NCBI RefSeq assembly: GCF_964204865.1
Contig: NC_135253.1
Coordinates: forward strand, 15,624,001-15,688,000
Reading direction: 5' to 3'
DNA: 64,000 nucleotides
Source of the DNA: Styela clava
Lineage: Eukaryota
Position 1 is the stretch's first letter; every line of letters begins with the position of its first letter. Shown one piece after another: positions 11,288 through 41,569 of this stretch. The notes beneath the pieces were generated by a model that was given only the letters and a program-made list of their open reading frames with translations, made no database searches and had not been told where the DNA came from. The position numbers were made by a program, and so were the translations under genes.

Positions 11288-14118
11288 ATGGTTTTTTTGA
11301 AAGATGCCACTATCGATAATTTAAAAATAACAACATGTGAAATGCATACATATGGTACGCCAATCAAAATAATTGAAAATGGTGCACCAGATATACCCGG
11401 CGGAACAATTTTGGATAAGATGAATAATTTAGAGACAAAATTTTCTTATATTATAAAGTAAGTATGATATAAACCAGAATGCTGTACTCCGCCCATTACT
11501 GTAAAAATTTCGGTTCATTTACAAATACCCAGTTCATTCATTCATCTATATATATATATATACATAAATATTGATCAAGATAGATAAAATTTACTGATTT
11601 GATAGAGTATCATTTAGTCTAATTATACCTCTATCTGAAACAAATTGGTTAGTTCATTTTTAACAGAAGCTGAATATGAGAAAAATTCAGTAGCAATAGA
11701 CTACTCAAATTTGCGTTTGACAAGAGATCTATTTCCTTGTGCGCCAACCTATTGGCCTATATATATTGTAAATCATCATTCCGGCGTTTTTAAGTAACAA
11801 TTTTCATAGAACTGACTTCACAGGCGTGATGTCAATAGTTTTGAAGTTCGAACCTGAAGTTTTGACTTAAAGTTAAAAGAAAGGCTGTCTCGGTCAATTT
11901 GTGCATGATGCCGATTTTCCTCAAGGAAATCCCCCTCCTTTACCCTAAAAGTGTTCAATTGTAACCACAAATAAACAACCGGCTACCACTTGTGGTGATA
12001 TATGATACGTAATCTTTTGTTTTATAGGTTTATGTCATATGAGCCTCGTGGGCATCACGCTGTTTCTGTTTTGCGGGTAAAACCTGACAATCCAAAAGCG
12101 GACCTAGCAATTTTATTTTATGAAAAAGAAGGATGCTTAACCATGTGTGGCGAAGCAACTCTGGCTTTTGGGAGGTTCAAATATGTTATTCGTTCTTTGT
12201 CAACTCTATTTAAACTAGTATTGAATACAATCAATCAAATTAGAATTAAACGAAATGTATGTACGCACATCTGTTCGGTTATGCCTTTGAAAGCTATTCT
12301 TTTTTACATCAATTAATGTCTACAAAAATTCAGGTACTGTCTTGATAATGGCCTTGTGAAAGCAACAGAACCAGAGACCTCTATCGCGATACAATGCCCA
12401 TGTGGCTTGGTACCAATATCTGTCAAATACAAAAACGGAATATCAGGGAATACAAGCTTGCGAAGCGTTCCATCGTTTGTATTCGAAACAGGTTAGTTTC
12501 TAATGACTACTGGACATATTTTCAGTTGTGGCAGAGCATACATTTGATTCCTTTATGGCTGCGGAAGTACGGTGTGGTGCAAGCTGAGTGAAAACGCAAT
12601 ATTAAATCCATGTCTGGATAATATACACCCCTTTGTTTTACATTTATGTCACAATGCATCCTTTAAAAAAAAAAGCTTGCGTGATGAAGAGTTAAAAAGA
12701 ACAACCGTAATAATGATTGTATTAGAAATTTACTGTTGCAAAAGGAACACCAACTAATAAATGCGAGTTTACATCATACGCGAAGTAACTGAGAACTCAT
12801 TAATTTTGAGATATTGAAATACATTTGGACGACATTGGAGTTATAAATGTAGATGTCGCTTTCGGAGGAGGCTTCTATACCATTGTATCAGCAGAGGATA
12901 TTGGGGTGAATTTTGGTGAGATAAAATCGTTGAAATTGGCGTCTAGGATCGGGCATATGATCAATGAAGCTATTGTGAAAAAGGTAATTTCCATACTATG
13001 CTTGTACTGTAAAGATGATTTGAATTCAAATTTTTTTTTCCTGCATATAATTTTACACATTTCTTCTATAGGTAAAGCTGAGTCACCCGGACAATGATGA
13101 CTTGGCTATTTTTAACGGAACTCTGGTTGTTGATACTTCGGATTTGTCAACGGATCGTGTGGTAAAACAAATGGCCGTATTCAGAGACAGTGAGGTGAAT
13201 CTATTTATAACAATACTTGAAAAAACAGTTATTTCTTTCACCTAAAAAGGTATTTTTGTCATTGGAGTTACTTCGACTATTATAAAGTTAAATGCACTTT
13301 TGTTAGCTGTAACAACATACATTTGGCTCGAGAAGTTATGTAGTGGTGTTTTGGTGGCCAAAAACAACACGTTTAAATATTCTGGGTATTTCACGTACCC
13401 CCTTTCTATAATCCAAATTCACTTCTTTCCCGATTTCAACAAGTACTCCCATAATACTAATAATTTGTGCCAATGGGGAGAGTAATGGAGAGCTTATTAT
13501 ATAATTTAATACAGGGAAGAGGGCCGTGTGGATCAGGTACGTCAGCACATATCGTCACGCTTCTGGCAAAAGGAAAATTGGCATTAGGAGAATCCGCAGT
13601 GTTCAAGAGTGCCATGAGTGGCGTTGGGTGAGCTTTAAAAAAATTCTAAATATTCTGAAGTGTTTTACCATTTTGCACTCTATAAAAACAAACTAACGGA
13701 ATCTAAGTTGATGGGAATTGGGGTAGAAGGTCGGTTTATAGCATATTCTTTATTGAACACGTTAGTGTACATAACGATCGTTTTAATATTATGTTGTTAT
13801 TCTTGTTTTTCTTCTCCTTTATCCTGATAAAATCTCTTTTGTCTTCGAATTTTCAGTGGTTAAAGATCGATTTTTTTGCCAGAAGCATATTATTTTTACC
13901 TATTCCAAAAATTTCTTTGGACCTTGCGGCATGCCCATATATTTGAGCATAGCTCTCTTGTTATTAGATTCACTGCTAAAGTTATTGAAAAAACAAAATG
14001 TGGAAAACACCGAGCCTTCACTGTTGAAATATCAGGAAAGGGGCATTATATTGGAAAACAAGTAATGACAATGGAACAAGACGATGCGCTAAAAACAGGA
14101 TTTATCGGAATTTCCTAA
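11288..14118 (+). CDS. L3HYPDH-like: Proline racemase / L3HYPDH family protein, copy B (intact, 344 aa)
   Basis: Exons 11288-11457, 12028-12174, 12334-12491, 12811-12983, 13072-13194, 13515-13627, 13968-14118 total 1035 nt, open. N-terminal CEMHTYGTPIKII, TMCGEA, GRGPCGSGT; exon sizes identical to copy A. Confidence 0.92.
13750..13900 (-). repeat. Dispersed repeat (AACAACATAAT...ACGATCGTTATGTCCAC...CCAATAA family) in intron 6 of gene B
   Basis: Absent from gene A intron 6; related sequence at ~6620-6720, ~7560-7690, ~32650-32700 and 41497-41607. Confidence 0.6.
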
Positions 14119-15226
14119 CTTTGGGGAAGTTATGGACAAAAACGTGATAAAAATAAGCAGTGCAATATAAAAATTGCCTCATTTTATTCTCAGTTAGAAG
14201 TCTAGAAGTAAATATTCTGAATAATATACTTGGTTACATATTTGAACAAGTGCACTTTTGGCCGTTTTGTTGGATTTTCAAAGGTCTTGATTTTATTGAC
14301 TAATTTCATTTTAAAACTCGTATATTATTTGCTACTCAATAATATTCGATAAATATAATTGTTGTGTAGAAATTTATATATATATATATATAATATTTCT
14401 AATTAATTTCATGAGACGACCATGTCTATAAGTGTGATTTATTTATGTGCGCCCTATTCATTCATACCACTTGAGTTGTTATTGAGCAACTTCCGTGTTA
14501 GATGGTTTGTCATACCACAGGTTCTGGTCATACTGCCGGCAGTGTAGAATTTCCTTGTGTATTATGTCATTATTTTAGTGTTTTGTTGCCGTAAACCTAA
14601 GTTATTCTTGTAAAATATAATAGTACTACAGGTATATTGTTTCCCCAGTTTGGCATAGATCTATTCACCAGTTATGTTGTATTTAACATTTCTGTAACTA
14701 GTCTACGTTCACAGTTAGTTTCCTGTGTGATTTTCGGATCTAATTTGGTATTTATCATAGTTTATTGTATTTTTCATTAGAGTGTTTGGTTGTATAAAGC
14801 TCTTGCAGGTGCATAATAAATATGGTTGATTTAAGATATGTACTCTGTTGCAATCGGAACCGGAAGAAGGTTATTTGTAGGGTTTTTTATCAATTCCAAA
14901 ATCAGCCTGCTTTTTCAAACAAGGACCTGTTTCAAATCAAATTTTTTCTGTAACTTTTGTATTTTTTTGAAATACTCCTTACATCGCCGAAAAACTACGC
15001 CGGAATGTTGCGTTTTGGCAGCTGCACACGCTGCCGGAATAATAATTTTAAAAATGTAATGAAAATTTTTGCTTTGACTTTCACTTTCATCGCTTAATTA
15101 ACTTCATCGCCAAGTTAGTACATATACGCTAATGTCATGAGATTTCAACAGCAATGTTTATCCGGGATATCAGGGAGACGTTTTGAGTGAAAAATGCAAG
15201 AAAAATCATGAAACGTAGTCCACGGC

Positions 15227-15495
15227 AAATTCGGCAAAACAAGTGGGCCTATCCAAAAGCAGTTGGATCAGGGGTGCGCCCATCGCCTAAATTCGGCAAA
15301 ACAAGTGGGCCTATCCAAAAGCAGTTGAATCAGGGGTGCGCCCATCGCCTAAATTCGGCAAAACAAGTGGGCCTATCCAAAAGCAGTTGGATCAGGGGTG
15401 CGCCCATCGCCTAAATTCGGCAAAACAAGTGGGCCTATCCAAAAGCAGTTGGATCGGTGGTGCGCCCACCTCCTAAATTCGGAAAAACAAGTGAC
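15227..15495 (+). repeat. 62-bp minisatellite, ~4.3 copies
   Basis: Unit AAATTCGGCAAAACAAGTGGGCCTATCCAAAAGCAGTTGGATCAGGGGTGCGCCCATCGCCT at 15227, 15289, 15351, 15413. Confidence 0.97.
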
Positions 15496-41141: not shown

Positions 41142-41177
<36 letters not shown>

Positions 41178-41569
41178 CTATCAACAACTATTGTCTGGTC
41201 TCTTTTATTTAGTAGTTACATTGAAATTGGTGATTTTTTTAAGTTGGATAGAAGCCCATGTGGTTCAGGAACAGCAGCTCATATTGCTCTGATACACGCC
41301 AAAGGTCTACTGGATGGTAATTGTCAAAAAACATTCCAAAGTATCTTCAATGATTCAAAGTAAGTACTCTGATGTCTAAAAAGTTATTTAGTGTCCAATT
41401 GGTTCTCAATAACTCTTACAATCACTAGCTCATATACGTTTAAATTTTTCCAAGGTTTACTGGAAAGGTTGTCAAAAAAGCCAAATGCGGAAACTTCGGT
41501 CCAGTATTCGAAGAGAAAAGCGACTTTTTAAAAACGTGTCGAACAACAAGAACAAGAACAACAACATAA
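39290..41569 (+). pseudogene. L3HYPDH-like: Proline racemase / L3HYPDH family copy C, C-terminus replaced by repeat sequence (probable pseudogene or aberrant allele)
   Basis: Exons 39290-39426, 39814-39963, 40180-40337, 40594-40763, 41002-41124, 41244-41359, 41455 onward. Motifs MHTCGEQ, EPRGHHDMFG, HNEGYGTMCEH, LYGTI, VFADRE-LDRSPCGSGT. After KCGNF the frame runs into a repeat and stops at 41567-41569. Confidence 0.85.
39580..39681. mobile_element. Small MITE in intron 1 of gene C
   Basis: Perfect 25-bp TIR CTCCTGAAGTATGCGCACCAAGATG / CATCTTGGTGCGCATACTTCAGGAG; related to the 6757-6988 element. Confidence 0.75.

Follow-up and report, generated by a model that had tools for sequence, protein, structure and literature searches.

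A tandem array in Styela clava combines racemase-family, remodelled glutathione synthetase-like and FLVCR-like transporter genes and evolves by gene birth and death

Remodelled paralogues of the housekeeping enzyme glutathione synthetase (GSS) have so far been described only from plant-parasitic nematodes, which secrete them as effectors. Gpa-GSS22 and Gpa-GSS30 of Globodera pallida are glutathione synthetase (GS)-like effectors of this type (PDB 5OEU, 5OEV, 5OET; Lilley et al. 2018, PMC5919673). In Globodera's GS-like effectors of clade 3 the Arg and the ATP pocket are kept, serines have become small residues, all glutamate-binding residues are changed and glutathione synthesis is lost (PMC5919673), and in crystals the nematode proteins still bind ADP and two Mg ions (PMC5919673). 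In a second family, that of proline racemase and L3HYPDH, the dehydratase type is defined by a Thr at the position of the second catalytic Cys (PMC4113996), the catalytic pair of human L3HYPDH being Cys104 and Thr273 (PMC9309405). Here we analyse a 64,000-nucleotide stretch of the genome of the chordate Styela clava (C4:15,624,001-15,688,000; the window), in which GSS-like genes stand beside racemase-family genes and FLVCR-like transporters of the major facilitator superfamily (MFS). An earlier account drawn from the letters of the window alone (the sequence-only reading) had proposed a biosynthetic gene cluster here. Literature searches turned up no account of this locus, of GSS-like genes in S. 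clava or of gene clusters encoded by tunicate animal genomes.

The region is a tandem array evolving by gene birth and death. Gene maps were built from Pfam and whole-genome family searches, six-frame comparison of open reading frames with unlinked paralogues on C6 and C18, and spliced models; a further 110 kb downstream of the window was examined as well. Within the window the genes run in the order racemase A, a GSS relic, racemase B, GSS-like D, E, relics, an MFS gene, racemase C, D', E' and a second MFS gene (MFS'). This is the order that the sequence-only reading had given, and its coordinates held where it offered them, 11288 being the ATG of racemase B and 41569 the stop codon of racemase C. 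Its family assignments stood too: PF05544 for the racemases, human GSS (PDB 2HGS, E 3e-46) for D, and MFS_1 with FLVCR1/FLVCR2 for the transporter. The window is the proximal part of an array of ~145 kb, which self-alignment and exon maps resolve into five tandem units of 22-27 kb each; the window holds the first two, and the downstream 110 kb holds three more followed by two further racemase copies. Racemases A and B, GSS-like D, D' and E', both MFS genes and racemase copies R2-R6 are kept under purifying selection, and some of them are transcribed. Decay affects racemase C, GSS-like E, the relics and, in units 3-5, the plus-strand GSS copies, which are truncated at the 5' end.

Self-alignment of the window reveals an older tandem block duplication of ~11 kb, in which racemase A and the GSS relic correspond to racemase B and the 5' half of D at ~86% nucleotide identity. 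In a recent duplication, unit 1 (D, E, relics, MFS and C; 15227-41497) recurs as unit 2, which begins at 42597 and extends past the end of the window; identity is 98%, falling to 94%. The statement that the families had been 'repeatedly co-duplicated' is thus borne out for one old and one recent event, and the window holds no more than these two. A 62-bp tandem repeat of 4.3 copies (15227-15493) sits precisely on the left boundary of the duplicated block, recurs at 42597-42998, and may have mediated unequal crossing-over. We favour, with moderate confidence, the view that the linkage of the three families is a by-product of tandem block duplication, without a shared pathway. The ~11-kb duplication first gave A with the GSS relic and B with D, and later copying of 22-27-kb blocks produced the five units. 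The three families would not need to share one metabolite, and their adjacency would arise most simply from block duplication. Linkage of this kind needs only tandem duplication of neighbouring blocks, so a 'biosynthetic cluster' stays hypothetical.

Synonymous divergence between units 1 and 2 is 0.01-0.07, and conserved blocks outside known exons are uninformative between them because the units are too young. So small a divergence would also suit an assembly artefact, in which units 1 and 2 are two haplotypes of one locus misassembled in tandem and the window contains one real unit. An older RefSeq protein (P0006) is compatible with that idea: it matches at 97.9% in exon 4 and is no closer to E or E' than E is to E' (2/482 differences), so alleles in S. 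clava may differ about as much as the units do. We nevertheless judge the artefact to be very improbable. The window contains no run of N, and the flanks are not colinear: unit 1 is bounded by racemase B and the truncated racemase C, unit 2 by racemase C and an intact R2, after which comes a 5'-truncated GSS copy. Moreover, the breakpoint falls inside exon 7 of racemase C, and three more units of different structure follow.

GSS-like genes are present genome-wide in this array alone, in about 7 full-length copies. D has a 5' untranslated region (UTR) exon at 18018-18141 and a coding sequence at 18252-22399 on the plus strand; it is intact, with 10 exons and 481 amino acids, and corresponds to XP_077967866.1, 'glutathione synthetase-like [Styela clava]' (P0004; most exons 100%, exon 4 99.3%). 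D' (45585-49722, plus strand) is likewise intact, has the same exon number and length, and differs from D at 4 amino acids; XP_077967867.1 (P0001) is a shorter isoform of it. On the minus strand, E' (52407-56431) is intact with 10 exons and 483 amino acids, whereas E (25085-29117), also of 10 exons and otherwise open, carries a premature in-frame TAG at 26496-26498 where E' has TAT. The relic beside racemase A (8520-9197, plus strand) consists of exon 2 pieces adjoining the first half of exon 4, the other exons being missing, and further relics at 29132-32188 on the minus strand are locally duplicated pieces like exon 5 and exon 4. The 5'-truncated plus-strand copies of units 3-5 (window-relative 68074-71239, 90230-93345 and 116162-119328) start in the middle of exon 4, with open frames. 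One pair of these truncated copies, D3 and D4, has a ratio of nonsynonymous to synonymous divergence (dN/dS) above 1, on very few changes.

The GSS-like proteins have a rewritten substrate pocket. D aligns with human GSS over residues 22-460 (2HGS, E 3.4e-46), and D paralogues carry precomputed PF03199 and PF03917 matches. From the human GSS literature we take E144, N146, K305, K364, E368, E425, K452 and the glycine-rich loop to serve ATP, Mg and phosphate, and R125, S149, S151, E214, N216, Q220, R267 and Y270 to bind gamma-glutamylcysteine. D retains R125, E144, K364, E368, E425, R450 and K452, and is altered at N146G, S149G, S151G, E214Y, N216C (G in E'), Q220C, R267L and Y270F, so that R125 is the one residue retained of the eight in the gamma-glutamylcysteine set. 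Position 146 is Gly in D and Ser in E', and K305 is aligned to Asn, with Lys as the next residue. The glycine-rich loop of D is one residue shorter, with G371V and N373K, and the alanine-rich loop is rewritten. The canonical S. clava GSS on C18 retains E144, N146, E214, N216 and Q220, the five residues checked. The sequence-only reading had allowed that D and E' might turn out to be ordinary glutathione synthetases. In both, each of the five side chains that would grip the gamma-glutamyl moiety has been exchanged and most of the ATP-grasp core is preserved, and D and E' are very probably not glutathione synthetases.

As the reacting-carboxylate Arg and most ATP/Mg residues are retained, the GSS-like proteins would be cytosolic ligases that join a carboxylate to an amine at the expense of ATP and still proceed through an acyl phosphate. 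Their acyl substrate would be something other than gamma-glutamylcysteine, and the nucleophile probably something other than glycine. A different reading is that they are no longer enzymes but binding, storage or regulatory proteins with a GSS fold, the selection acting on them reflecting a non-catalytic role. The lost Mg ligand N146, the Asn aligned to K305, the shortened glycine-rich loop and two rewritten substrate loops all point in that direction. We consider this quite unlikely, however, since E144, K364, E368, E425, R450, K452 and Arg125 are kept in D, in E' and, as far as modelled, in E3, and since nematode GS-like effectors of the same pattern bind ADP and two Mg ions (PMC5919673).

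Database searches placed D among S. clava sequences. A HMMER search with exon 4 of D against 1.84 billion representatives returned, besides the S. clava cluster, only two spurious hits to bacterial repeat proteins. Protein searches with the whole of D and then with residues 285-481 returned S. clava paralogues only; this search needs shared five-residue words and therefore shows only that close relatives of D are missing from the databases. An AlphaFold2 model of D built from a five-sequence paralogue alignment was unusable (predicted local distance difference test, pLDDT, 34; predicted template-modelling score, pTM, 0.28).

The racemase-family genes A and B have also changed at the active site. 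Racemase A encodes 344 amino acids in seven exons with an intact frame; exon 1 lies upstream of the window start, at -365..-196, and exons 2-7 lie at 723-869, 1030-1187, 1503-1675, 1763-1885, 2160-2272 and 2408-2558 on the plus strand. Racemase B, also intact and of 344 amino acids, has coding exons at 11288-11457, 12028-12174, 12334-12491, 12811-12983, 13072-13194, 13515-13627 and 13968-14118 on the plus strand, and its 3' UTR extends to ~14835. Pro_racemase (PF05544), a family with a two-lobed fold, is matched exon by exon in A, B and C. Among PDB structures, exons 2 and 5 match L3HYPDH and T3LHyp dehydratase best, and exon 6 matches TcPRAC best. Both catalytic Cys are present in A and B (MCGE...GPCGSG) and in C (MCEH...SPCGSG). 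In A and B, MCGE replaces MCGH and GRGPCGSG replaces DRSPCGSG, exchanging a His for Glu and an Asp for Gly; C retains this His and Asp but has Glu in place of the Gly just before the His. We take it from the TcPRAC structure that the His of MCGH and the Asp of DRSPCG contact the imino nitrogen. With both contacts replaced in A and B, a changed substrate is therefore plausible. To judge from these motifs, A and B would be two-base (Cys/Cys) epimerases whose substrate is probably neither plain proline nor plain hydroxyproline.

A Cys/Cys pair as such does not set the locus apart, since it is also found in the unlinked C6 paralogue and in R2-R5. Active-site change, one of the arguments of the sequence-only reading, consequently holds for GSS-like D and E and for racemases A and B but not for the Cys pair of racemase C. 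A whole-genome search found nine Pro_racemase copies on C4 and one gene on C6, and no others. None of A, B and C has Thr at the second catalytic position; R6 alone does (DRSPTGSG), outside the window. This only Cys/Thr, L3HYPDH-type copy of the genome (window-relative 140852-143084; C4:15764852-15767084) is found 77 kb beyond the window, where the array ends distally, and adjoins a Cys/Cys copy. Both canonical genes that the sequence-only reading had proposed to look for elsewhere in the genome are accounted for in this way, GSS on C18 and the Cys/Thr type at the far end of the same array. R2-R5 share ~92% protein identity with R6 (R2 differs at 28/333 residues) and ~80% with the C6 gene, and racemases of the A/B type are 46% identical to R2. 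In all C4 racemases an intron of ~100 bases (41124-41244 and equivalents) interrupts sequence that the C6 gene carries in one exon (C6:10873910-10874183), a gain or loss between paralogues.

Racemase C (39290-41569, plus strand) illustrates the decay of a copy. Its exons 1-6 are open and encode both Cys, and exon 7 is broken by the duplication breakpoint: homology with intact copies ends at 41497 inside the exon, and the final 34 residues are swapped for 23 unrelated ones before the stop at 41569. The protein thus ends without the last 34 residues of the fold. It also carries G88E beside the catalytic Cys (MCGH to MCEH) and D163Y (VDISYGG to VYISYGG). Changes on its own lineage number 8 nonsynonymous against 2 synonymous, compared with 0 against 6 for R2; C is a decaying copy and a probable pseudogene. 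The open frames reported across the locus are accordingly found in A, B, D, D', E', MFS and MFS', and not in C, truncated in exon 7, or in E, with its TAG.

The transporter genes lie on the minus strand. The first FLVCR-like (SLC49-like) MFS gene has three exons (35397-35099, 34953-34283 and 33955-33525) and the second, MFS', lies at 59110-60988, also in three exons; both are intact and encode 466 amino acids, with 19 differences between them. The protein matches MFS_1 (E 1.5e-10) and has roughly 12 hydrophobic segments. Its PDB matches at E<=0.01 are FLVCR2 and FLVCR1 only (best E 8e-9), a weak similarity. That it is an 'exporter' is an assumption; its nearest solved relatives include FLVCR2, for which the newest PDB title reads 'Choline/ethanolamine transporter'. 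At least 40 FLVCR-like loci, 30-40% identical to the window copy, are spread across many chromosomes. These loci are often in tandem clusters and have the same long middle exon; they include C2:12.43-12.54, C2:19.79-19.80, C13:15.33-15.35, C4:9.70-9.74 and C4:17.80-17.82 Mb. Intron 1 of the array gene (35098-34954) is of the GC-AG type, with the donor AG|GCAAGT, and is kept in all five copies.

Purifying selection is evident in the intact copies of all three families. We estimated dN/dS by the Nei-Gojobori method on locally built spliced models, with p values for omega below 1. A dN/dS near 1 had been named beforehand as an outcome that would speak against a biosynthetic cluster; the intact genes give 0.23 for A-B (synonymous divergence, dS, 0.21; p 2e-9), 0.22 for D-E' (dS 0.40; p 1e-18) and 0.25 for MFS-MFS' (p 2e-5). 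The remaining comparisons agree, with 0.11 for D-D' (p 2e-4) and 0.16 each for R2-R6 and R2-C6.

Transcription was followed in four RNA-like runs (X1-X4), chosen via the MFS gene, whose assembled contigs were placed on 13001-19000; such contigs show presence rather than absence, and absence in them is weak evidence. Introns 5 and 6 of racemase B are spliced (GT..AG joints 13194/13515 and 13627/13968) in X2, X3 and X4, from three studies, and one 1469-nt contig of B reaches the 3' UTR end near 14835. For D (or D'), splicing of the 5' UTR intron and of intron 1 (joints 18141/18248 and 18398/18642) is seen in X1 only. RNA variants in the D contigs do not match D', and D and D' are not separable in the reads. 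Co-expression, which the sequence-only reading had proposed as a check, gains no support from these runs: B and D are each spliced in RNA, B in three runs and D in the fourth, and never in one run together, an absence that weighs little in contigs. An operon joining B and D was discarded, the 3' UTR of B running to near 14835 and D opening with an exon near 18018. Separately, pieces of 30-38 bases at 13749-13966 (intron 6 of B) and 16152-16183 have very deep RNA contig cover in all four runs and are probably a dispersed expressed repeat; Rfam gave no match on 13500-16400.

These data bear on the alternative that the array is a true animal metabolic cluster, in which an epimerase supplies a D-imino or D-amino acid, GSS-derived ligases condense it to a non-ribosomal small peptide or amide and the SLC49-like MFS protein carries the product or a precursor through a membrane, the whole unit being amplified for higher output. 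Such a cluster would accord with three adjacent families that are each under purifying selection, a ligase pocket rebuilt around a retained ATP site, the paired change at the imino-nitrogen site of A and B, and a GSS-like family found nowhere else in the genome; ascidian blood cells, moreover, contain small modified peptides such as tunichrome Sp-1 (PMC3039461). We still regard it as unlikely. B and D occur together in 0/4 RNA runs, block duplication alone accounts for the linkage, and the units are incomplete as sets, with C dead, E interrupted by a stop and D3-D5 truncated. In addition, R2-R5 are ~92% identical to the Cys/Thr dehydratase-type R6 and ~80% identical to the unlinked Cys/Cys C6 gene, and the MFS protein may transport in either direction.

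A more specific proposal, which we hold to be highly unlikely, is that the array forms a ribosome-independent small-peptide pathway of ascidian blood cells, with tunichrome- or halocyamine-like products. Tunichrome Sp-1 of Styela plicata is Dopa-Dopa-Gly-Pro-DeDopamine, and non-ribosomal assembly is one proposed route to it (PMC3039461). D-type and E-type ligases, which differ in the residues of their pockets, would link amino acids, or catechol amino acids, together; a proline-type residue would be supplied or edited by the Cys/Cys epimerases, and the SLC49-like transporter would bring the product or its precursor into vacuoles. Should this be true, the locus would open a first genetic way into peptides of the tunichrome or halocyamine type.

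We therefore return to linkage by tandem block duplication, against which several points have to be set. Three adjacent non-homologous small-molecule families are uncommon in animals, and their adjacency has been kept through two rounds of duplication with most copies intact, which fits selection for co-inheritance. The RNA contigs are compatible with co-expression in an unsampled tissue. As for the ligase activity that we ascribe to the GSS-like proteins, it is not certain, given the change of the Mg ligand N146 to Gly or Ser and the Asn aligned to K305, albeit with a Lys adjoining.

In the remainder of the window, where the sequence-only reading had recognised no genes, 20 other large open reading frames have no credible Pfam match, with one sub-threshold Baculo_VP91_N hit at 16.8 bits. 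A dispersed repeat of a few hundred bases, common to the window and the C6 locus, lies at 8364-8800, 9717-10605, 20623-20964 and 47950-48288; D and D' each carry a copy in intron 6, and others lie next to the GSS relic.

A chordate has independently come to the same pocket rewriting as the nematode effectors and still has its canonical GSS at another genomic site; the array points to a small family of animal-made putative ATP-grasp ligases. GSS-like genes beside unusual two-Cys racemases and members of an expanded transporter family make the array a concrete candidate for animal secondary metabolism. If the genes are functionally unrelated, the locus is still a clear example of birth and death, in which fresh pseudogenes (C and E) lie beside constrained copies.

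Finally, the array can be set against the systems it most resembles. With metabolic gene clusters it shares the adjacency of three non-homologous gene families, a common pathway role being hypothetical here. Its transporter resembles SLC49 proteins (FLVCR1 and FLVCR2) in its MFS_1 domain, a weak similarity, and differs from them in belonging to a family that has expanded in S. clava to a large set of at least 40 loci. Racemases A, B and C share PF05544 and the MCG.. and ..PCGSG motifs, with both Cys, with the proline racemase/L3HYPDH family. Unlike proline racemases, however, A and B have Glu in the motif after the first Cys and Gly before R-x-P-C-G, and unlike L3HYPDH dehydratases, A, B and C are without the defining Thr (PMC4113996, PMC9309405).

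The GSS-like proteins share with human GSS (2HGS) and plant homoglutathione synthetase (3KAJ) the fold, PF03199 and PF03917, and mostly kept ATP-grasp catalytic residues, whereas N146, S149, S151, E214, N216, Q220, R267 and Y270 of the human enzyme are replaced in D and the alanine-rich loop (A-loop) is rewritten. The PDB matches of D include Globodera proteins, and as with the GS-like effectors of cyst and reniform nematodes, the housekeeping GSS has been duplicated many times and a canonical copy retained. Like those effectors, D mostly keeps the ATP pocket, keeps the reacting-carboxylate Arg, has small, uncharged residues in place of two serines, and has had all the charged residues that hold the glutamate of gamma-Glu-Cys replaced. 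The N termini of D and E are hydrophilic (MSANNGFIEQEFEK..., MSSGNSITEHHFEN...; read by eye) and present no signal peptide or other secretion signal, so the S. clava proteins, unlike those of the nematodes, are not obviously secreted. In further contrast to the nematode effectors, the S. clava family is small (about 7 full-length members), and it is confined to one array, in a chordate, beside racemase-family and MFS genes.

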